A DNA stretch of 63,701 nucleotides, counting the filler, from Salisapilia sapeloensis CBS 127946 (taxonomy: Eukaryota > Protista > Oomycota): the NCBI GenBank assembly GCA_023334545.1. It is 5 parts of 5 records of this genome, joined end to end, with 100 filler letters (N's around TTAATTAATTAA, not from the genome) between each part and the next. Parts side by side here need not be neighbours in the genome. Positions count along the whole stretch, not along the records: positions 1 to 25,483 come from JAADVB010000251.1; 4 more parts are not named here. The stretch is one strand, 5' to 3'. Below, piece by piece: positions 4,118 to 24,526 of this stretch; the first letter of the stretch is position 1; the number at the start of each line of letters is the position of its first letter. The notes under the pieces are model-generated. The model was not told where the DNA came from. It worked only from the letters and a program-made list of their open reading frames with translations, and searched no databases. Position numbers and translations under genes: made by a program.

Positions 4118-5497
4118 ATGCGATCACCCAAAGCGCCGCGAAGGGATCAGTACAACATTGGAGGAATGGAGAGCACTGACCAAAAAGCCGTGGGTGTGGA
4201 TGCGGTACCGCAACAGGCTTCTAATCTCAGCCCTCGACGCCATGGCGCTATGAGTGCAAGGGCCGCTGTCGAGACAAAGAGGACGACAGACGATGACGAG
4301 GTTGTCAGTCGACGAGGTGTCGGAGAACCTCACCGCTCAAAATGCCTCGTGATCTACACTGGGGGTACATTTGGAATGGTCCCGAACCATGAAGGAGTGC
4401 TGCACCCGTCGAGTGGATTTTTGCAACAAAAAGTGTCCGAAATGGACGAGTTCCAATTCGCGGATATGCCTGAAATCACCGTGTCCGAGTGGAAGGACCC
4501 GATCGACTCCTCTGATATGTCCCCTGCCGATTGGGAAAAGATTGCTCAGGAGATTGAAGCAGCCTACTGGGAATACGACGGATTTGTCGTTTTACAAGGC
4601 ACCGATACCATGGCCTACACTGCAGCTGCATTGTCCTTCATGCTCGAGTACTTGGGCAAACCAGTGGTAATTTCCGGTGCCATGATCCCGCTTCATTTCC
4701 CACACAGTGATGCTCGAAGGAATCTGGTCATGTCTGTCATGTGTGCCTCTACGCTAGAAATTCCTGAGGTTTGTATCTACGCACATGACAAGCTACTTCG
4801 TGGTAACCGATCTACAAAGCTTGCGAACATGTCCGTGGACGCTTTCCAATCGCCCAATCTACCTCCGCTAGCATCCACTGGGGTGGAGACGACGGTGGAC
4901 CAATCTTTGATCTTACCGTATCCACGAAGACGCTTTAGCATCTTCACGGACATCTTCACCAACGTGTGCGTCTTCCATTTAGTACCAGGCTTTGACGATG
5001 AGTGCGTTGAAGCGTACATTCGTCTTCACAAGGAGCGGACGACTCCGTCCTCTTCTCCAAAGAGCAATGAGAAGAAAAAGAACCAGGCTTCTGAACGGCA
5101 GCATCGAAAGGCCATTGTGTTTTCTCTTTATGGCACGGGGAATGCACCATTGAAACAAGATGGCTTCTTACGTGTCGTAAAGCTAGCTCTGGAAGCGGAG
5201 ATTCCAGTGGCAATTACGTCGCAATGCGTGTATGGAAGGACACAACTGGACACGTATGCTACGGGCATTGAGTTGCTACGCATGGGAGTCATCACTTCAT
5301 TGGACATGACACTAGAAGCGACAGTGGCTAAATTGGCATACTTGATCGGCAAGGGCTTTTATGGAGAAGAATTGAAGAAGAAGATGGAGACGGACCTACG
5401 AGGCGAACTGTCCGTTGTCGATGCCATTATTGCTGGAGACGACTTGAACCGGAACAAACAATATCGAAAGATGGTCGTCAAAAACTTTGCTCACTAG
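4118..5497 (+). CDS. Type I (cytosolic, AnsA-like) L-asparaginase with an N-terminal extension
   Basis: Motifs IYTGGTFGM, GTDTMAY, KPVVISGA, LLRGNRSTK, YGTGNAP and the C-terminal DMTLEA..AKL. Intronless ORF. Confidence 0.9.
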   Translation: MRSPKAPRRDQYNIGGMESTDQKAVGVDAVPQQASNLSPRRHGAMSARAAVETKRTTDDDEVVSRRGVGEPHRSKCLVIYTGGTFGMVPNHEGVLHPSSGFLQQKVSEMDEFQFADMPEITVSEWKDPIDSSDMSPADWEKIAQEIEAAYWEYDGFVVLQGTDTMAYTAAALSFMLEYLGKPVVISGAMIPLHFPHSDARRNLVMSVMCASTLEIPEVCIYAHDKLLRGNRSTKLANMSVDAFQSPNLPPLASTGVETTVDQSLILPYPRRRFSIFTDIFTNVCVFHLVPGFDDECVEAYIRLHKERTTPSSSPKSNEKKKNQASERQHRKAIVFSLYGTGNAPLKQDGFLRVVKLALEAEIPVAITSQCVYGRTQLDTYATGIELLRMGVITSLDMTLEATVAKLAYLIGKGFYGEELKKKMETDLRGELSVVDAIIAGDDLNRNKQYRKMVVKNFAH

Positions 5498-5795: not shown

Positions 5796-7604
5796 ATGGA
5801 TGCAAGAGCGACCGAACCGGCAATTCATGGTAGGCCATCAGGTTGGGCGAGGCCGTCGACGACGCTCCAGCCACACCAACAGAACAGATATACTGAGTCA
5901 GTCATTGGTACGATGTACAGCAGCAATGTGAATGAACCGTCTGGAGTCTCTGGAGACCATCCACAGATTAAAAAGCTCGCTGCGATGGAAGTTGTCGGAA
6001 CTGAAGCTTCAGGTGCATTTAGAAACCATAGGCGTCGCTGGCCTGGTGTTGTTGCCTTCGTCGTCATGATACTGACTGCGATTGCTCTAATATCATACGG
6101 CTCCGTCCAGACGTATCATTCCAAGTTAGAACGTGCCAAAATCTACCAAGAATACCTCAAAGGGGAGCGTACAATTAAAGATGGCCTCTCAGACGGTAGT
6201 GACCTCGTGTCGGACGATGGCCAGATCGGAAATCCAAAGTCCTATGACGTGAACAAAGAGTGTCACATGCCAAATTACCAAAGCAAGCAAGGAAAGATCT
6301 ATGCCGTTGCTCCAAATGGTACGGAAGTACCTATCCAAATCAAAGGTGTCAACTGGTTTGGCATGGAAACCGGTCTTGCCATTGTCTACGGTCTATGGGA
6401 AAACGCTATCAACGGTACTACAGCGTACGAAGTCGCGTCCTTCCTAGCTCGAAACAACTTTAATGCCGTCCGACTACCTATTTCTGTGGAGAATATTCGG
6501 GACGAGAATCCACCAAAGCCAGGCGTCATTAACACCGCGACAAATCGTGCGTTCGATATTCAAAACTTTACAAGTACACTTCAATCGGTAGTGAAGGCTC
6601 TCGCATATCGTGAAATCGGTGTACTCATTAGTATGCACACGTTGACGAACAAAGAGTCAGGTGGGAACTGGTACAGCGAAAAACTAGGCGTAACCAAGGC
6701 TGACTTTCTTGATGCCATCGGCGCCGTGACAAAGGCTTTATGTCACGATGACTATTGGAATGTCATGGGTATTGACTTAAAGAATGAGCCAGAGACAGCA
6801 ACGTGGGGAACAGGAGAAGAAGACGATTTTGTCATTGGAGCAGAGAAGATTGCAAAGAAAATGCTAGACGGGTGTCCGAAATGGCTCGGGTTTGTCGAAG
6901 GCATCGTAGGTGACTCGTACACCGTTGAGATCGAAGGACAAGAATTTAACTACTACAATTGGTGGGGTGGCGGGTTGCAGGGAGCAAGGACGGCAAAGCC
7001 CGACTTTGGCGTGGATCATAAGCTCGTCTGGGCACCACATTACTACACGACTGCTGTCTCTCCCCAAATGTACTTTTATGGAAATGGCACTAGCCCAGAC
7101 TATCATCCCTATGTGGAATTGGACGACGATATGCTGCTAGCTAGAGTAAATGGCACGATGACGAATATGTTTGGGTATCTGATAGACGATCCCACAGAGT
7201 ACGCTCTGTTACTGGGAGAGTTTGCTGGTCTGTACGTTGGTGACACTCATCCGAATAAGACGATTCAGCGTACGACGGAAATGACTATCAAGGTGATTAT
7301 GAAAGAAGGTTATGAAGGCGGATTTATGTGGAGTCTCAACCCCGAGTCCAGCTACCAGTACTCGGACGCAGCAACGTACGTATTGCGTCAATCTGTCTCA
7401 GCCACTACGTGTCGCTACATCTTATATATGCCGAAACTGACGATTTTTTATTGCATTTGCAGCAAAGGATCCTTTACGGAAGGTCTGCTAGAGGACGACT
7501 GGCTGACTACGAACCAAAAGTTCTTGGATGCCTTCGAACCGATGAATAAGCTGCCGCATCTATCGAAATTCCCATGCTTTGAAAAGAAAGGCGATGGCAA
7601 CTAG
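5796..7604 (+). CDS. GH5 endo-beta-glucanase paralog 2, type II membrane-anchored
   Basis: GVNWFGMET, LKNEP, WAPHYY, LGEFAG, GLLEDDW. The ORF reads through an in-frame 87-nt intron at 7376-7462 (GTACGT...TTGCAG). The true start may be a downstream Met. Confidence 0.9.
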   Translation: MDARATEPAIHGRPSGWARPSTTLQPHQQNRYTESVIGTMYSSNVNEPSGVSGDHPQIKKLAAMEVVGTEASGAFRNHRRRWPGVVAFVVMILTAIALISYGSVQTYHSKLERAKIYQEYLKGERTIKDGLSDGSDLVSDDGQIGNPKSYDVNKECHMPNYQSKQGKIYAVAPNGTEVPIQIKGVNWFGMETGLAIVYGLWENAINGTTAYEVASFLARNNFNAVRLPISVENIRDENPPKPGVINTATNRAFDIQNFTSTLQSVVKALAYREIGVLISMHTLTNKESGGNWYSEKLGVTKADFLDAIGAVTKALCHDDYWNVMGIDLKNEPETATWGTGEEDDFVIGAEKIAKKMLDGCPKWLGFVEGIVGDSYTVEIEGQEFNYYNWWGGGLQGARTAKPDFGVDHKLVWAPHYYTTAVSPQMYFYGNGTSPDYHPYVELDDDMLLARVNGTMTNMFGYLIDDPTEYALLLGEFAGLYVGDTHPNKTIQRTTEMTIKVIMKEGYEGGFMWSLNPESSYQYSDAATYVLRQSVSATTCRYILYMPKLTIFYCICSKGSFTEGLLEDDWLTTNQKFLDAFEPMNKLPHLSKFPCFEKKGDGN

Positions 7605-8064: not shown

Positions 8065-10183
8065 ATGGACTTAAGCACACACTATTGGCATCGAGTCCTT
8101 CTTCTATGCATCGTAGTATTACTATCGCTACACATTGTCAACGCAGATGAAGAATCGCATGAAGTATATGTCCATTCCTTCCATCTCTATCCAATTGCCA
8201 TACTCATCACATCCTATGATAGTACAATGTCGGTGATGAAGTCGTGATCTGGGTGAACAAAGTCGGACCGTTTAACAACCCGCAGGAGACATACACGTAC
8301 AACACTCTTCCATTCTGTAAAGCACCAGGAGAAGAGGAACCGGAGACCCATGCTCTCGGCATTGGCGAGATCCTAGAAGGCAATGAGCTCGTACACTCGG
8401 GCATGAAAGTCAAGTTCGGAGTTGACACGCCCCACACCACGCTTTGCTCCCAAACGCTCACAGACGACGATGCTCTTACGCTCGGAGCTGCTGTATGCTC
8501 ATCTCCACATAATAATTGCGATGCAAAGCCTAACATGCTAATAGGTGGATGACCACTACTGGTACCAGCTTAACGTCGACAACTTACCTGTCTGGGGACT
8601 TGTCGGCAAAGTGATGAAGCCGACGGACGAATCTGAGCTACTGACGCAGGTATGTCCTTCTCATCTTCCATCGCTCCTATCGTCATCGTACTAAGACACG
8701 ACGATAGTATCCTGTCGGCACTCGGATGCTCTACACACACAAGAAATTCAGCATCTCGTACAACGGTCCGTACATTATCCATGTCAACCTGACGTACGCC
8801 AACGTCCTCACCTCCATCGCGTCCAACAAGCCCGTTGAATTCACATACGAAGTGACATGGACAAAAACAGACATTCCATTCAACCTACGCTTTGATCGCT
8901 ATCTAGAAGATGAGTACGTTGTTCTCTATGCTATATGCGTTATGTAGAACTCACGTGTATTTCGACATAGCTTCTTTGAGCACCAGATCCATTGGTTCTC
9001 GATCTTTAACTCGTTCATGATGGTCATCTTCTTATGCGGTCTCGTCGCCCTCATCCTCTTGAGAACACTTCGCAACGATTATGCGAAATTTACGGAAGAT
9101 GATGCCGATGACATGCTTTTAGATGGAGGTAAAGGTGCCCTCTTGCGTGATGACGCCAACTCTGGATGGAAACTGCTGCACGGCGACGTCTTTCGAGCGC
9201 CTCCTCACCTCTTACTCTTCACAGCACTACTGGGTACAGGCGCACAGCTTCTCGTCCTAGCTATTTGCGTCATGTTCGCTGCCATCGCGTCTTCCTTGTA
9301 TCGAGAACCCGGCGGTATCGTCTCCGTTGGGCTGACCGTCTACGCCTTCTCGGCACTCATGAACGGATATGCGTCTGGTGCCTTCTACCATCAGTTCTTC
9401 TACCCTCGCGTTAGCAAAGACTGGATCCGAGCCATGTGTCTAAGCTCTGCTCTTTTACCCACAGTTATCTTTGTCACGGTCTTCTTTATCAACGCACTGG
9501 CAGTGTACTACGGAACGACGTTTGCCATTCCTTTTGTCACGATCGTTCAAGTGATCCTAGTCTGGTTCTTTGTCTCGTGTCCTCTGTCGGTATTGGGAAC
9601 CATCTTAGGTCGTCATGGTGCTGCTAAAACTGGCTTCCCATGCCGCGTAAACAAGTTCCCGAGAGAAGTGCCTCAAGCGAGATGGTACTTGCGACCTCCT
9701 ATCATGATCGCCTTGACAGGCATCCTTCCCTTCGGCAGCATCTTTATCGAGATGTACTTCATCTTCGCCTCGTTCTGGAACTACAAGTTCTACTATGTCT
9801 ACGGCTTCATGCTTCTCGTCTTCCTCATCTTGTCTGTCGTGACGCTATGTGTTACGATCGTGTGCACCTACTTTTTACTCAACGCAGAGAACTATCGATG
9901 GCACTGGACGTCATTCTTTGCAGCAGGAAGCACAGCAGGATATGTCTTTCTCTATTCGATCTACTTTTACTTTTTCAAGACGCGCATGTCTGGATTCCTC
10001 CAAACGTGCTTCTACTTCGGATATATGTATTCTACGATTGATCTACTATGTCTAGATGGGAAACTAATACTTGGATATAGGGGTCTCTTCTGCTTTGCTT
10101 TCTTCATCATGTGCGGATCCATCGGATACTATGGTAGTAGTGCCTTTACTCGACGCATCTATCGGAACATCAAGTGCGAATAA
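8065..10183 (+). CDS. TM9SF3: Transmembrane 9 superfamily (EMP70/TM9SF3-like) protein, 6 exons
   Basis: Signal peptide, then VNKVGPFNNPQETYTYNTLPFC, VDNLPVWG, FFEHQIHWFSIFNSFMMVIFL, GWKLLHGDVFR, GILPFGSIFIEMYFI, ENYRWHW. Five short GT-AG introns, the last in-frame at 10027-10080. Confidence 0.9.
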
Positions 10184-10287
10184 ACAAGCAAGCTTTGCCT
10201 ATTCCTTCTATCGATCGACTCTCTTCTTTCAAAACTACTTGATCGCTCGTGATAACACACAAAAGATGGCAAATCAAATGTACATGA

Positions 10288-12329
10288 CTATTCTTGAAAG
10301 GAATTTATGATCTTGATAATCGATTGCCATCCGCCGAGGATCATGCCGCACGCGCCAACGGTTATCAAAGTGCAGTGGAAGACGATAGAGATAATGGATG
10401 GAGAGTGCTTATCCAGCGATACGTACAGCAGAGGTGGGATAACGATTGCCAACATACTAGACCCAATGGCTCCAAAGAGACTGATTAACAGACCAACGTC
10501 TGGGACACATACGGCAATTACCATCAACGACGTGCACAGCATGGAACGGAAGAGCGTCCGATTGCATTCGTACTTGGAGATCGTACACACGTGCTGTTCC
10601 ACACATGCAGGCATCGCCCCTTCTTCCTCCATCTTTTGCTGTTTCTGATGTGCATCCACGTCAACGACACCGGACGGCTCGTTGTCTTGATGCCTTCCTT
10701 GTACATCTACTCCAGCTTCTAGAGCTTCCGAGTGATGTTCACGACGTCTCCGGCGTTGAGAAGGTGGGGCAAAGGCTGACTTGTGAGCCATGGCACGCTC
10801 CAGCACTTCGATCGCAGGGTAGAATTGTGTCGGGAAGGAGAGTAAACAGGCAAATGCCATGAGCAGATTGGCGACAGTGACGAGCATACCATCGGCATAT
10901 TGGAAAAGGACTGCTGTGACGCTTCCATTGTCAATTACGCCAAAGGAGATCGTCGGAATAAGACCAATGCAGAGGTAGATGACGAGGATGAAGAGCATGA
11001 CACACCATAGGACGCGTGGAAAGAGCTCTGGATTCTTCATCTCGTTCTGGATAGGAAGGATGAGACCAATGCCTTCAAAGCTGTACACCGCCGTACCTGT
11101 AGAACATGAGAAGCATGTCGTGATAAATGATAGTACAAATAACATACCAAAAAAGCCTGGTAAGAGATCCCAATCGACTAGTGTTGGCTTTCGATGCGCC
11201 GTCTTGTCGTTTGCAGCAAAGTCAAAGGAACAGTAGAAGACGATGCCAATCGCAATCACAACCGACAAGTTCCCTATCGCCATGGTGACTACTAGTTCTT
11301 CTCTAAAGGTACTTTATAGGACGTACCGATGTTCGAAAATGGCGTGATCTTTGCTAGTGTACGGATCCAGGAGAGGACCAGTATGAAGGGGAAAATAAGA
11401 AAGATAATTTGCCGCTCCTGTAGCGCCTCGGACATTCTATCCAAAGTATTAGTTCAAAAGTATACACGAGACAATCAAGAAATGTAGTACGATTCCGGCA
11501 ACACGACGTGGATGTTTGTCGCGATGAATGTAAAGTAGACACAGCAGATACCCAATTGAGTACCGACGAGGAAGATGTCAATGAGCAGTTTGCCTTTCTT
11601 CCCTAAGACTGCTTTGCCGACGTCTCCGAACGACATCCGACCTTCCGGTTTCACCTTCCGCTTCACGTACAAGAGCAAATTCATGTTGTAGATCGACAGC
11701 AATGCCTATGTATACATCTAAGTACTAGTTTCCTATATCTACTACTACATAAAGTTTACGAGTGTCACGAACATGATCGAGGCACCAACGACGCCGGATT
11801 GGGAGAAGCCGTTCGGTAAGGACATGGCTCCCGGTCCGACATTCCCTTTCAGCAAGTGGATGACCGTGGCGGCAATCCCGATCTGTTTTGCCGTTTTTTT
11901 TCGTCTCGATCGTCTACCTCGACTGTTGGATCCTGTCGTCCTTGTCCTCGTGGATGATGAAGTAGATGACGCGCCGCTTTCGCTTGGAAGACTAACGGAA
12001 GATGTCGCGGTTCCATTCACTTTCTTATCGCCTTCTTTCAACTTTGAAGACTCCTTTGTACTAGACAGAGCGGAGCCATCGTGATCACCAACGGAGCTGG
12101 CATGCCGCTGCTGGTCGCTACCGTCCTCATCGCTCTCGACGAGCTCATGATGCTGATTCGCACGTCTCGCAGCAAGACGTTTCGCGTGCTTATCAAAGCT
12201 CGCGAGTGCCTGCTGCTGCGTTCGTATCGCACGGTCTTTAATGGATGATCCGGCATTGACATCGGTCTGGTCCTCCATACTGGACTGGGGGGTGGATCCA
12301 GTGCTATGGAGTAAGCCACTCGACTCCAT
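10288..12329 (-). CDS. Amino acid/auxin permease (AAAP, SLC36-like) transporter, multi-exon
   Basis: IHLLKGNVGPGAMSLPNGF, SFGDVG, TQLGICCVYF, AVYSFEGIGLILPI and SFPTQFYP spread over ORFs 11745-12341, 11475-11702 and 10288-11283. First ATG at 12329 (12341 is TTG). Exact exon boundaries are approximate. Confidence 0.85.
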
Positions 12330-12873
12330 AGAAAAATGCAAAGAAAAGGATACGGAAGGATATAGAACCTAGTCTGTTTTAAAGGTCCTTCACGATGCGT
12401 TCACTTGCTAACTTGAGTACAAAGTGCACGCCGAAAGGTTTGTTCTGAAGCCCCGACGCATGCGACGGTTTATTAACACGTATGATCAGGAAAAATATTG
12501 GTACAGTCTGCAGGTGCGCTTTCACAGGAACAGCTGGAAACTGTCTATTCTAATCTGAGACAAACGGGATCTCGGAAGCGAGCTGCCGTCCATGTTCAAG
12601 TTGCACGTACGCGTCTGGAAGATGGTCGAGACGACACGTTGAGCGTTTGGATAGGACAAAAGTACTTTTGGACATTGATTAGACCATACGAGTACTTGTA
12701 CAAGTTTAATGGATGCATGCGCACGTACTTGAATTAACGGTACCAATAGACTGCTCGGCGTTCGAAAGGACACAGCTGGGCTATTCTTAGCTTTCGTATC
12801 CACACGGACGATGTATCAAGAGCAATACGATCTACTGGTCATTTGGCGAGACACATATTCGTCATAATAGACG

Positions 12874-15038
12874 TTACACTTTGGTTTCCTACGTACATCA
12901 TCAGTAGCTCGTACAATACATGTACAAGTATTACGTACCAAACTCATGACGATACGATTCCACGCTTCCATACTCTGTATCAAGTGTCTCCACTTGGCTT
13001 CTCCATCTAGCCCCTTCTTCTTCCGTTCCTTCTGAACAAGCTCCATCAACTCTTCCGTTCCCTCCACATGCTCCAACTTTTGTATCAACTGATCGTAAAA
13101 CGCATTCGATAACATATCCACTTGTGCCTCAGGAGGTGCCTGTACATGCTCCTGTCGTACTTGCATATCCTTCTCCTTCTTCTCGGAACGTATAGGGGAT
13201 GAAGACGGTACGGTATTAAATGATCCACTAGAACTACTGATAGAGGACGCTCGATGCCATGCTGCAGGCGTCGTCAATGACCACGTATCTGTTTCGCCAC
13301 TTGACTCCATTTCCCCGTCTTTCTGGACGATATTGAACGACAGATTGCGAGAGAAGACAAGACCTCGGTACGCATTCTTTCGAACGCTTCGGAGGCATCT
13401 CCAGAGAGTCGAAAAGGATGCTCGAGACCGACGAGAGGCACCAATGTGGTACTGCTTGTAGGCATATTCGATCAAAACATGATGCACATGGTCCTGTCCG
13501 ACGTACGACAGAATCAACGTCCGTGCATCCTTCCGACGCAGCAAAAACGAACCTTCTGGTCGGTCTTTCAAAAGACTTTCAGAGCGAGACCGAGTGATAC
13601 TGCCAGCGAAAAACTTCCACACCATCTCATCATTCAATCGATCTTGCTCTCGTTTCCTCTCCTCCTTCTCTTCCTCCGTCTCCCCCACCTCTTCCACACT
13701 CTCATCCTCTTCCTCTTCTTCACTATCCAAGTACTTGACATTCGCGAAAGGGAATGAAAACTCCGTCTCTTCTTCGGAACTTTCTTCCTCCTCTCGAGCA
13801 ATAAAACTATCCGAGTGGACGTACAATCCCTTCCCATCGTCTCGACCGAGGATCCAGTAGCTACCATAGTCACGTCGAGGCCATAGCTCTTGTGCCGTGC
13901 CTGCTTTCGACTCGTTATGACCGACACTCTCGTCTTCTACGTCCTGTCGAGGCAATGAGGTTATAGCAAACGTTGGTAGACGTAGGAGAGACGCAGAGAA
14001 CTCCGTCGAGTCGTCTTCAGACGGACCACTTTCGATCGGCAGACTAGTCTCCGCCGATCCGAACAGCGGCTGTGGCTTATCCATAAACTCCATCGACTTC
14101 ATACTACGCTGACTGGATCGATTCTTGATAATAAACTCAACCATACGCTCTAAAGCAGCCATGACCGCCGGATGGCGTTCGTTTTCGCCAAACGAAGACC
14201 GACCAACGGTCCACATCCAGCCTTTGAAGCCTGCAGCTTTTGCATACGAGTTAATATCGTCGCTTGCCATGACACGCTTCTGGATCATGTCTGCTTTATG
14301 AGCTAACAGGAAGAACGGAATCTCTTTCGCTGAGATGTATTGACCTAAATTATGTCGCCACTTGTCGATGGCAGCGATGGAGCTAACTCGGTGGACATTA
14401 AAGACCATGAAGAGTCCGTCAAGCTCTTCACATAATAGAGATTGTAAAGACGATGCAGATATGCCTTTACCAGTATCTACTTCTATACTAGACACATCCC
14501 AAATGTGAAGAATCACCTCTCGATTGCCTGTCTTTGGAGATCGGAACTTGAGAGAGCTCACATCAGCGCCAATGGTTGGATTATACGTCACCCGAAATGG
14601 CCGTTGTAGCCACCTACGTACGATACTAGTCTTCCCCTATAGATATGGTTACTATTCTAGCACGATACGAATGAAATACATGTCAGATACCACGCCTGGC
14701 CCTCCGACGATGCCGATTTTAAACTCCAGGTTGGCGCTAAACGTATCAGGACCAGAGTGGGCTGGGCCGATGGAAGCAGCCGGACCAGATTCGGCCCTTG
14801 ATCCGGCCGCACCGTTGCCAAGGAAGGTGGAGGACAGCATCTTCATCCATCGCGAAGTCGCATGATCCACTTCCTGCACAAACGACTGACCGATGGCGCT
14901 GAAGCGTGCACTTGAAGCCTCTGATCCGTCTGCTGGGAAAGACACGGGATATGAGCTAGCAGAGGATGTTGGAGATTGAATCGGAGATCGTGTAGGCATG
15001 GGAGGCAGCCCATCCCGAGCAGCTTGTCGCTCCCCCAT
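12874..15038 (-). CDS. Rab-like small GTPase domain fused to an acidic coiled coil and an SH2 domain
   Basis: Splicing intron 14637-14690 restores the P-loop GGPGVGKTS. Then YNPTIGAD, WDVSS (G3) and AHKAD (G4). The SH2 reads WKFFAGSITRSRSESLLKDRPEGSFLLRR...HVHHVLI. The 3' end is uncertain; a 50-nt intron would end the protein ETKV* at 12874. Confidence 0.75.
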
Positions 15039-15259
15039 TGTCAGATATTGTGATGCAGATCACTAATTCTACGTTACAATCTCTTTTTCAATACGTTAAT
15101 ATAGACAGACGGTGTGTTTTAGTGGATGGGTAAAATGTAGCCACTTGAATAAATATGAGTGATACACCAAATAAAGTATAAACAATTGCCAACATTAATT
15201 ATGGGCTGGAAGTTTCGACTTGGCAGTTTTTATAAGCGACCTGTCCAAAGTTGGCCAAA

Positions 15260-22792: not shown

Positions 22793-24526
22793 CTAGGTCA
22801 TCAACGGATCTTTTGGTGTACTTTTATCTGCAGCAATGCCGACAAACGTCGGGAAACGCGGGATACCGCTCTTGGTGAGCTCCTGACACTTGTACACAAT
22901 GATCGATCCGATGGCTGGTGGGTTCGATCGTTGAGCATCTGACATGCCACTCGCGACCTTGAAGGTCTTGCCACTCGCCATGCGACATAAGAGCGCTCCC
23001 GTCATGTCCTTGTACTTGCCTTTGCCACCTTCATGCGACACGACTTCCGCTTCGCCGTCGTAGAAAGACTTGAGCTTAAGCAAAGACTTGGATCGAACGC
23101 GATCGTACTTGCTTTGCGGTTTACGTAGCATGACGCCTTCACCTCCTAGAGCTTCAATCTCCTTTAGCATCTCGTACACGTGATCATGGTCACGGCATGT
23201 CGTATGCTCCACCCACGTCATGTATGCCGACGCTGTACGGCGAACTAGCTCCTGTCCGTGGCTCATCCGATCTTCGAACGCATCTTGGTCGGATGTCAGC
23301 GCATCGAATACCTTGTACACGATGTCGGCCCATTTTTCCGATCCTTGCGTTTTCACGACACCCACCGTCACGTCAAATTGACCTCTCCCACCAAACAGTT
23401 CGCCATCCAAGTCCACATCATCCGGAAAGTCTTGCTTAAACCAGTCCGGAGCAGGATAGATATTCCCTTCTCTCGAAAGAAATTCACGGCGAGAGGCTTT
23501 CCAGTACGCACGCACACCGTCGAGCTTCTCACTCATCCACCAGCCTTCGACATTTTGCTTCGTAGGATCCCACTTGAACGCTAGCATCACATTCGGACGG
23601 TCCTTTGGTCGTTTCGTTGGTGTCAATGCTTTTTGAGCTTTTTGCTCAGATAAATTGACTCGAGCTTGTTCGAATTCAGCTCCAAGGAGCTGCACTAAGT
23701 GCTTGCAACTGCGATTGGACGGAGCAACGCCACCTTGGAAGCGCCACGCTGGACAACTACACGTATACCCGTCTGCCGTACGCTTAATGGTGTAGGTACT
23801 ACCTGAATCACTTTTCAAGTGAGTGGTATCTCCAACCTCGAGTACCGTCTTGGGTTGCACATCCGCCGACGCCGACGCTTCAGATGTATCCATGTGAGCA
23901 TCGTAGTCATCTGTAGACGAATCCGCCAGTTTCTGATTCCATTCCTCTTCCGAGAGAAGTATCGCGCCTACTTTTTCAGCGGCTTCAACTTTTTTACCAG
24001 ACTTATCTCCACACACGACGATGGTCGTCACTTTCGTGACTCGAGGAGCGACGGAGAAACCAGCTCGAGTTGCCGCTTCCTTCGCTTCAATACGGGTCTG
24101 AGTCACCAACTTACCAGTAAACACCACGACTTCTTCCGAACTGGCCTTGGCTGTCTTTTTCACAGGAGACTTGGCGTTTGCTTGGTTTTCGGCAGTGCGT
24201 TTAGTGCCTCGACGTCCACTCGGTTTCTCTTCGTCTGCTCCTGTCGACACGACTTCACGCTGTGGACTCACGTCTCTCACTTGCTTTCGACTCGACTCTT
24301 CTGCCTCAAGTCGAGACATCCATTCCGCTTCCGTCATTACGGTGATGTTGTCGTTTTGAGCAGATTCAATTTTCTTTGCGCCTACCTTTTCACCACAAAC
24401 AAGAATCGTCGTACTTTTATTCATCGCATTACTCGTCTTGTAGCCATACTCCTCAGCTTGCTTCATCGCTTCTGATCGAGTCATATTGGTAAGTTTGCCA
24501 GTGAAGACGACATGTTCAGAGCTCAT
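22793..24526 (-). CDS. ATP-dependent DNA ligase (minimal bacterial/viral type) with two N-terminal BRCT domains and a SWIM zinc finger
   Basis: Ligase motifs I MSEKLDGVRA, III LDGEL, IIIa YKVFDA, IV GEGVML, V LLKLK, then an OB fold ending IPRFPTF. Two VVFTGKL...TR.EA...T.I.VCG.K BRCT repeats. SWIM CSC-x15-CKH. Intronless. Confidence 0.88.
   Translation of the reverse strand: MSSEHVVFTGKLTNMTRSEAMKQAEEYGYKTSNAMNKSTTILVCGEKVGAKKIESAQNDNITVMTEAEWMSRLEAEESSRKQVRDVSPQREVVSTGADEEKPSGRRGTKRTAENQANAKSPVKKTAKASSEEVVVFTGKLVTQTRIEAKEAATRAGFSVAPRVTKVTTIVVCGDKSGKKVEAAEKVGAILLSEEEWNQKLADSSTDDYDAHMDTSEASASADVQPKTVLEVGDTTHLKSDSGSTYTIKRTADGYTCSCPAWRFQGGVAPSNRSCKHLVQLLGAEFEQARVNLSEQKAQKALTPTKRPKDRPNVMLAFKWDPTKQNVEGWWMSEKLDGVRAYWKASRREFLSREGNIYPAPDWFKQDFPDDVDLDGELFGGRGQFDVTVGVVKTQGSEKWADIVYKVFDALTSDQDAFEDRMSHGQELVRRTASAYMTWVEHTTCRDHDHVYEMLKEIEALGGEGVMLRKPQSKYDRVRSKSLLKLKSFYDGEAEVVSHEGGKGKYKDMTGALLCRMASGKTFKVASGMSDAQRSNPPAIGSIIVYKCQELTKSGIPRFPTFVGIAADKSTPKDPLMT

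Follow-up and report, generated by a model that had tools for sequence, protein, structure and literature searches.

Does a single oomycete gene join a Rab-like GTPase to an SH2 domain that could read phosphotyrosine, and if so, what might its product do? The question is raised by a gene at 12874-15038 of a 63,701-nucleotide stretch of DNA from Salisapilia sapeloensis CBS 127946 (GenBank assembly GCA_023334545.1), hereafter the window, which consists of five parts of five records joined end to end with 100 filler letters between each part and the next; positions count along the whole window, and positions 1 to 25,483 come from JAADVB010000251.1. SH2-based phosphotyrosine signalling is usually seen as an invention of opisthokonts and amoebozoans. 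The initial annotation, made from the sequence alone, read at this locus an atypical Rab-like G domain, an acidic segment and an SH2 domain at about 13370-13620 with its phosphotyrosine-binding arginine, and proposed a pseudo- or constitutively-on GTPase linking phosphotyrosine reading to membrane traffic. According to the analysis described here, the gene encodes a multidomain signalling protein that is conserved in stramenopiles. The best explanation overall, to which we give somewhat better than even credence, is a nucleotide-binding pseudoGTPase of the Rnd/RhoH kind that is positioned by its SH2 domain and acts as a platform for partners, a function that we infer for a protein whose architecture, transcript and conservation are observed.

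Gene structure and transcript

The locus (15038..12874, minus strand) is a three-exon gene encoding a protein of 686 amino acids (aa), according to sequence reading and computed splice junctions, and the limits initially given to it are exactly its stop and start codons. The start codon at 15038 is the first ATG that follows an upstream in-frame stop, and the C-terminus, ...MSLETKV, is consistent in alignment with the orthologue ends NLELSTL.. and TLEITAP. The G domain from GKTS onward and the SH2 domain lie within the same 566-codon exon 2, and Pfam matches to Ras (52.1 bits) and SH2 (31.6 bits) both exceed their cut-offs. All of the motifs originally read (GGPGVGKTS across the splice, YNPTIGAD, WDVSS, HKAD and GSFLLRR) are present (Table 1).

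The sequencing runs comprised a DNA run (X1), the probable source of the assembly, and four runs of a second study, with 85-87% of sampled words; X1 and three of the other four (X2, X3 and X5), for which the label RNA is a guess, were placed on positions 12700-15200. X2, X3 and X5 each yielded one contig, about 4.4 kb long, which spans 12729..15040-15101 without a break and has exactly two joints within the gene, where 50 nt and 54 nt are skipped at the predicted intron sites. The joint ends read CT..AC on the plus strand, equivalent to GT..AG on the gene strand, and run X1 contains both introns and neither joint. Because precisely two canonical introns are missing from the X2, X3 and X5 contigs, these are transcript-derived; all three runs belong to one study and count as one independent source. 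The contigs span both domains with the introns spliced out, so that the initial reading of one transcript and not two genes holds. The locus is an intact, transcribed gene, single-copy in the 22.4-Mb assembly of 1365 contigs (G000).

The possibility of an artefact, in which neighbouring GTPase and SH2 genes were wrongly joined or a pseudogene is decaying, is refuted. Altered G motifs by themselves might hint at decay, and nothing else was found in its favour; against it, both domains are encoded in one exon, RNA contigs from three samples span the whole gene with both introns removed, and about 30 orthologues have the same architecture with the altered motifs invariant, or nearly so, among them. 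A 3′ read-through open reading frame (ORF; 591 aa, ending ...SRSYCS) was also considered, and was ruled out by the orthologues and by the RNA, which shows the 50-nt intron and the short final exon.

The SH2 domain and candidate phosphotyrosine enzymes

A sequence search of the PDB with the SH2 domain returned ZAP-70 C-SH2 (E 7e-6), followed by Vav, Vav2 and Syk. The window's own sequence, from the helix preceding the SH2 domain to the end of exon 2, was folded by AlphaFold2 with a 27-sequence alignment, giving the SH2 domain a predicted local distance difference test score (pLDDT) of about 90. Foldseek matched this model to the SH2 domains of ZAP-70, SOCS2, PLCgamma1, SHP2 and Nck1 at a probability of 1.0, and VIA, which is independent of Foldseek, gave Z scores of 9-9.7 to SOCS1, SHP2, PLCgamma1, SOCS6 and Syk. 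The phosphotyrosine-pocket residues alphaA2 Arg, betaB5 Arg and betaD4 His are invariant across the aligned family. By every criterion of sequence and fold this is a Src-type SH2 domain, predicted to be able to bind phosphotyrosine.

Four SH2 loci are found in the assembly: Spt6, a short SH2-only protein, a STAND/NACHT-like P-loop protein with a C-terminal SH2 domain, and the Rab-like/SH2 gene. The count is the same as in Phytophthora infestans, whose kinome paper reports 'only four proteins' with plausible SH2 domains and none with phosphotyrosine-binding (PTB) domains, the SH2 proteins being counted and not described (PMC3019232). The same paper lists two putative tyrosine kinases with HRD(I/L)AARN (PMC3019232). 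A survey of G000 with a degenerate DNA pattern for HRD[ILV]AARN gave one match, against none for the reversed control; it identifies a kinase (L005 1129-1920, G000:C670:4298-5089) with the tyrosine-kinase signature HRDIAARN in subdomain VIb and PVKYMAPE in subdomain VIII, which is probably the orthologue of the two putative P. infestans tyrosine kinases. Genome profile scans found more than 140 matches to PF07714 and one strong match (205 bits) to a classical protein tyrosine phosphatase (PTP). With the kinase signature, the phosphatase and the SH2 loci all present, candidate phosphotyrosine writers, eraser and readers therefore coexist in the genome.

These findings bear on whether the SH2 domain might instead recognise phosphoserine, phosphothreonine or unphosphorylated partners, as the tandem SH2 of Spt6 partly does, or be purely structural. 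Such a role would suit oomycetes, in which candidate tyrosine kinases are very few and SH2 proteins number only four, and Spt6-type SH2 domains are among the structural matches (Z 8.9-9.2). However, the three residues of the classical pocket are all invariant, the sequence searches lead to ZAP-70, Vav and Syk as closest matches and not to Spt6, and the genome encodes a classical PTP as well as a kinase bearing the tyrosine-kinase signature; we consider a role apart from phosphotyrosine improbable.

Two of the other SH2 loci may be described briefly. The SH2-only short ORF (L001 1255-1890, G000:C484) has a single Pfam domain, an SH2 domain (WFHGDMSR...GAFLIRFSES) that scores higher than any other in the genome, at 43.7-45.3 bits; the match extends over only the first 44 positions of the model, and the domain is probably split by an intron. 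The STAND-like ORF (L003 34-1806, G000:C80:34573-36345; 591 aa) is a second unusual SH2 architecture, in which N-terminal AAA_16, AAA_22 and NACHT matches all fall slightly under their cut-offs and the C-terminal SH2 match (27.7 bits) is over its cut-off.

The G domain

On the exon 2 product, Pfam matches Ras (PF00071) with a cut-off of 21.6 bits and also Roc (37.7 bits). The top match in the PDB sequence search is Rab32 (54.7 bits), followed by Rab38 and Rab29/Rab7L1, with other Rabs at 38.8 bits or less. When a profile of 16 family G domains was compared with the PDB, the nine best distinct sequences were all Rab32/38/29 (76-83 bits), followed by Rab1a (70 bits). In the alignment with Rab32, WDVSSIE lies opposite WDIAG(Q)E, LLAHKAD opposite LLANKCD and GFKGWMWTVGR opposite GFAGWFETSAK. 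In a full-length AlphaFold2 model of a Phytophthora orthologue (P0001), the G domain has a pLDDT of 70-85 and superposes on Rab10, Rab35, Rab1, Rab8 and Rab32 with a target template modelling (TM) score of 0.8-0.86. By eye, forms resembling RabF1 (IGADV), RabF2 (ILHIW) and RabF5 (MVFNVH) are recognisable and RabF3 and RabF4, in switch II, are replaced; the alignments show switch II to be remodelled, with an insertion. A search of ESM Atlas features returned only generic small-GTPase clusters (0.80-0.83), under the level of evidence, and an NCBIfam scan of exon 2 found no match in a library that is prokaryotic and uninformative here.

The guanine nucleotide-binding motifs are conserved in part. 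Ras requires Gly60 for the GTP-driven change in switch II, Gln61 for hydrolysis and Asp119 for guanine specificity. None of the canonical forms of G3 (DxxG and Gln), G4 (NKxD) and G5 (SAK) is present, the corresponding residues being DVSS-Ile, HKAD and VGR. The G3 glycine and glutamine are lost and G1, the G2 threonine, the G3 aspartate and the G4 lysine and aspartate are kept, which is the sequence pattern of a nucleotide-binding, catalytically impaired pseudoGTPase; 'pseudo- or constitutively-on GTPase' was thus a reasonable inference from the motifs.

No C-terminal prenylation cysteine motif (CC, CXC, CCXX or similar) was found in the 686-aa protein, and most orthologues likewise have none; therefore the prenyl anchor of Rabs is missing. 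N-myristoylation was considered as well and ruled out: the protein starts with MGE, in which the glutamate at position 3 is unfavourable, and Gly2 is missing in the orthologues. To judge by its sequence the protein is Rab-like and probably derived from Rab32, and it is not a Rab proper. The suggested link to membrane traffic did not find support, there being no prenylation cysteine, no N-myristoylation site and a replaced switch II/RabF3-F4 region, and its only basis is the similarity to Rab32/38/29.

Orthologues and distant relatives

A word-index search found 34 family members with 36-52% sequence identity, most of them 560-750 aa long, and with E values of 1e-159 to 1e-83, far beyond chance. 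They come from Phytophthora (many species), Plasmopara, Bremia, Peronospora, Hyaloperonospora, Peronosclerospora, Pythium, Nothophytophthora, Albugo, Aphanomyces and Saprolegnia. Most have precomputed matches to Ras, Roc and SH2, and they are named only 'hypothetical' or 'SH2 domain-containing protein'. Orthologues thus occur in Peronosporales, Pythium, Albugo and Saprolegniales. Conservation was assessed in an alignment of 29 oomycete sequences sampling four orders. HKAD, WTVG and FLLRRKD are invariant or nearly so, and WDVSS is altered in five of the 29 sequences (WDVAS in two, and WDISS, WDVSC and WDVSF in one each), so that the altered motifs match the canonical ones in conservation. The alignment indicates that they are under purifying selection on a derived state and not in decay.

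An exhaustive profile search yielded 44 representatives at E <1e-30 and, below the oomycete tier, three distant proteins: one of 640 aa from a JGI metagenome (P0072), one of 662 aa from ENA, and one of 591 aa from the xanthophyte Tribonema minus (P0079). The JGI and ENA proteins have Pfam matches to Ras and SH2; the T. minus protein has a Pfam match to Ras, and its SH2 region matches the family profile. In alignment, HKxD, [FY]L[LI]RR[KR] and the C-terminal helix that contains tryptophan are still present in the Tribonema and JGI proteins. Since the Tribonema and metagenome relatives share the fusion, it is older than the oomycetes. G3 reads WDVAGAQ in the Tribonema and JGI proteins, with DxxG retained and the glutamine one position later, and WDVGS in the ENA protein; from these sequences, loss of the G3 glycine looks like an oomycete innovation. 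The C-terminus of the Tribonema protein, LCCS, resembles a Rab prenylation motif, which in a single sequence is a lead only.

Two gene models deserve caution. The P-loop region of the Tribonema protein is apparently mis-modelled, the stretch LAEHLPPRA..KMLVAHK occurring twice, a duplication that suggests a gene-model error. A Phytophthora nicotianae model named 'WRKY transcription factor 19' (P0035) wrongly fuses pieces of the GTPase-SH2 gene with a transporter.

Proposed mode of action

In the proposed mechanism, the G domain would still bind guanine nucleotide, because the P-loop, the switch I threonine, the G3 aspartate and the G4 lysine and aspartate are intact. GTP hydrolysis is expected to be very slow and classical switching absent, because the glycine hinge of DxxG and the catalytic glutamine are lost, leaving the domain in a locked state like that of Rnd or RhoH. 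Because the prenyl group is missing, docking of the SH2 domain on phosphotyrosine sites might position the protein in place of a lipid anchor. The writer of such sites could be the single kinase of this genome that bears the tyrosine-kinase signature, or dual-specificity kinases of the TKL family, and the eraser could be the classical PTP. Binding partners would then find platforms in the G domain, in the linker motifs and in the C-terminal helical bundle.

Several points weigh against this mechanism. Nucleotide binding, slow hydrolysis and phosphotyrosine binding are predicted from sequence and modelled fold, and no ligand or partner is known. The preference for Rab32/38/29 amounts to a margin of 6-13 bits over other Rabs in PDB sequence and profile matches, which are not a phylogeny. 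The changes in G4 (Asn to His) and G5 (SAK to VGR) could weaken nucleotide binding altogether. The full-length model of P0001 has a predicted TM score (pTM) of 0.36, too low for any conclusion on inter-domain contacts. Some GTPases that lack the catalytic glutamine remain full switches, a GTPase-activating protein (GAP) supplying the residue, as RapGAP does for Rap. The extent of tyrosine phosphorylation in oomycetes is still uncertain (PMC3019232).

The protein might be a true switch with non-canonical catalysis, cycling from GTP to GDP and back. A GAP, or dimerisation, would then contribute a residue in trans (compare Rap with RapGAP, and the GAD-type GTPases), and the SH2 domain would only recruit the switch to phosphotyrosine sites. 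The invariance of G1, G2, the G3 aspartate and the G4 lysine and aspartate is as expected if nucleotide chemistry matters, the non-oomycete relatives keep DxxG with the glutamine displaced by one position, and the Saprolegnia orthologue has a RabGAP-TBC gene about 5 kb downstream, a weak hint. On the other hand, with serine in place of the DxxG glycine there is no flexible hinge to couple the gamma-phosphate with switch II, an effect known from Ras G60A; switch II itself is remodelled and has an insertion; and no cognate GAP or guanine nucleotide exchange factor (GEF) is known. A catalytically competent switch of this kind is possible, though we do not favour it.

A broader speculation, which we hold to be doubtful, extends the pseudoGTPase mechanism to an old phosphotyrosine module of stramenopiles, independent of the opisthokont and amoebozoan ones. 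A GTPase derived from Rab32 would have lost the cycle of prenyl group and guanine nucleotide dissociation inhibitor (GDI) and, in oomycetes, the GTP switch, and would now be placed and controlled by its own SH2 domain, with tyrosine phosphorylation replacing nucleotide exchange as the on/off signal of a Rab-like platform for effectors; the Tribonema relative, with its DxxG and CCS end, would be an intermediate.

Other parts of the protein

The consensus of the N-terminal motif in exon 1 is ATS(K/R)WMKM(I/L)SSTFLG; in alignment it is ATSKWMKMISSTFLG in Peronosporales and Albugo and has a weaker form in Saprolegniales. In the model of P0001, about 130 residues C-terminal of the G domain are predicted to be disordered. 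The linker, which has 31 glutamates in 146 aa, contains two conserved motifs with the consensus sequences FSxSLLRxPTKAITTLPR and GGxW[IM][LF]GxxKGxYL, and the tyrosine of the second is conserved in 26 of the 29 sequences. The second motif is a candidate phospho-site or docking motif. The acidic segment noticed originally was recovered as a glutamate-rich stretch, of which the helical part corresponds to residues 394-433 of the orthologue model and 2-14 of the window model. A structure search with the C-terminal three-helix bundle returned only generic helical bundles (Z about 8, within the noise for helical models) and no domain match; the bundle is specific to the family.

The conserved tyrosine invites comparison with STAT proteins: this residue of KGxYL, or another tyrosine, might be phosphorylated and bound by an SH2 domain, either in another molecule or within its own, with the C-terminal bundle aiding association, so that the main ligand of the SH2 domain would be the protein itself. 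The location of the tyrosine in a predicted disordered region, adjoining the invariant W..G motif, agrees with this, as does a confidently predicted helical bundle conserved as far as Tribonema. However, the tyrosine is replaced by phenylalanine in Pythium oligandrum, and neither the Tribonema nor the metagenome relatives have the motif. Dimerisation of this kind, which is compatible with an SH2-positioned pseudoGTPase, is unlikely.

Table 1. Features of the Rab-like/SH2 gene and its product in the window, in order of transcription
Feature	Position	Strand	Description
Exon 1	14691..15038	minus	116 aa; start codon, Ser/Pro/Ala-rich N-terminal region, conserved N-terminal motif, strand beta1, first half of the P-loop (KIGIVGGPGV)
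Conserved N-terminal motif VDHATSRWMKMLSSTFLG	14817..14870	minus	Low-confidence helix in the orthologue model (helix 13-25)
Rab32-like G domain	14076..14729 (including intron 1)	minus	Pfam, PDB sequence matches, orthologue model
G1/P-loop GGPGVGKTS	14625..14705, interrupted by intron 1	minus	Canonical GxxxxGK[ST]; kept in all full-length orthologues
Intron 1	14637..14690	minus	54 nt, GT..AG; divides the P-loop between GGPGV and GKTS
Exon 2	12939..14636	minus	566 aa, starts GKTSIVRRW; remainder of the G domain, disordered linker, acidic helix, SH2, Ser-rich linker, C-terminal helical bundle
Switch I/G2 YNPTIGAD	14562..14585	minus	Thr invariant in orthologues
Altered G3 WDVSS, then I-E	14487..14501	minus	Asp kept; DxxG Gly replaced by Ser, catalytic Gln by Ile
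Altered G4 HKAD	14289..14300	minus	Canonical NKxD; Lys and guanine-specific Asp kept, Asn replaced by His
G5-equivalent TVGR in GFKGWMWTVGR	14199..14210	minus	GFAGWFETSAK in Rab32; W-TVG invariant
Conserved linear motif FSASLLRLPTFAITSLPRQ	13944..14000	minus	Predicted disordered; pLDDT <50 in the orthologue model
Conserved linear motif YGSYWILGRDDGKGLYV	13818..13868	minus	Trp and Gly invariant; predicted disordered
Acidic Glu-rich stretch	13632..13796	minus	C-terminal part is a long helix leading into SH2
SH2 domain	13353..13619 (predicted fold)	minus	alphaA2 Arg (SITR), betaB5 Arg (FLLRR) and betaD4 His (VHHV) kept
GSFLLRR	near 13533-13553	minus	Motif reading
Pfam SH2 match	13428-13613, aa 342-403	minus	PF00017, 31.6 bits (cut-off 21); 35.3 bits in the genome scan
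Ser-rich linker	13164..13340	minus	Predicted disordered
C-terminal three-helix bundle (QEHVQAPP...FY...WRHLIQSMEAWNRIV)	12939..13154	minus	pLDDT about 90; conserved as far as Tribonema
Intron 2	12889..12938	minus	50 nt, GTACGT..TAG
Exon 3	12874..12888	minus	ETKV and stop codon; protein C-terminus ...MSLETKV, no Cys

Genome context

The order of the Rab-like/SH2 gene, an amino acid transporter of the Aa_trans family directly downstream on the same strand, and EMP70 is common to the window (9017-15038), P. infestans and Saprolegnia parasitica (L006 6001-12995 and L007 6001-12712). A BRCT DNA-ligase gene is located directly upstream in P. infestans and at 22793-24526 in the window. The 4.4-kb contigs extend about 2.1 kb into the transporter gene, which could be due to overlapping untranslated regions, read-through or assembly merging. 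A third intron (12665-12728, minus strand; 64 nt, GTACGT..AAAAG) is missing from the RNA contigs; it sits in the non-coding stretch between the stop codon at 12874 and the transporter gene, which is also on the minus strand. Neighbouring ORFs in the window, at 4118-5497 and 5796-7604, code for an L-asparaginase, with its N- and C-terminal domains, and for a protein of the GH5 cellulase family. The assembly is small for an oomycete, and no database orthologue exceeds 52% identity with the GTPase-SH2 protein; either the organism represents a divergent lineage with a compact genome or the assembly is partial.

Comparison with known systems

The implied novelty held in part. A full-text literature search found no paper describing a GTPase-SH2 protein in oomycetes or stramenopiles, though it may be listed in surveys of SH2 evolution. 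Novelty was overstated insofar as orthologues with both Ras and SH2 annotations have entries in NCBI and UniProt for about 30 oomycete species and oomycete SH2 proteins have been counted before (PMC3019232). The pairing of Ras with SH2 is already annotated automatically in the databases, and the gene itself is no new discovery. New here are the confirmation of the transcript, a position close to Rab32, a catalogue of the motifs, the finding that the family reaches an ochrophyte alga, and a gene neighbourhood that is conserved.

Oomycetes include major pathogens of crops and fish, and we know of no oomycete SH2 protein other than Spt6 with a known role. A strongly conserved, single-copy SH2-GTPase protein is a tractable entry to the role of tyrosine phosphorylation in these organisms. 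It is also a natural case in which the switch residues of a small GTPase were replaced and then fixed across the four sampled oomycete orders, with relatives that keep DxxG available for comparison.

The uncharacterised 'SH2 domain-containing protein' entries of, for example, P. infestans, P. sojae (PHYSODRAFT_489080), Plasmopara halstedii, Albugo laibachii and S. parasitica (SPRG_20327) are orthologues with 36-52% identity that share the domain order, the altered motifs and the gene neighbours; the Salisapilia copy is that of a more divergent oomycete and does not differ in kind.

Rab32, Rab38 and Rab29 (Rab7L1), the best matches of the G domain, have in common with it the Rab fold, the GF-GW preceding G5 and the W-D that begins G3. 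They differ in that Rab WDIAGQE, NKCD and TSAK correspond to WDVSS(I/A)E, HKAD and TVGR, and in that the Rab-like/SH2 protein has switch II and RabF3/F4 replaced, lacks prenylation cysteines and possesses about 500 further residues including the SH2 domain.

Small-GTPase domains are also found beside signalling domains within the large multidomain GTPases Rab44, Rab45 and CRACR2A (EF-hands and a coiled coil), Miro and RhoBTB. The accessory domains of these proteins are different, and Rab44/45/46 keep canonical G motifs and prenylation.

Rnd1-3 and RhoH are prenylated Rho-family proteins in which the DxxG glycine is kept, the catalytic glutamine is missing, and the P-loop and base-recognition residues are intact. 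The Rab-like/SH2 protein resembles them in the latter two respects, whereas it also lacks the DxxG glycine and the lipid anchor; its membership in their biochemical class is predicted from sequence.

In animals, SH2 domains are combined with regulators of small GTPases in RIN1-3 (SH2 with a Vps9 Rab5-GEF), Vav (GEF with SH2) and p120RasGAP (SH2-SH3-SH2 with GAP), and the SH2 domains of Vav and RasGAP are among the PDB sequence or structure matches of the SH2 domain described here. These proteins likewise bring phosphotyrosine reading and Ras-superfamily GTPase signalling together in one polypeptide. Outside the SH2 domain they are not homologous to the oomycete protein: the animal SH2 domains are attached to a GEF or a GAP, whereas that of the Rab-like/SH2 protein is attached to the GTPase-like domain itself.

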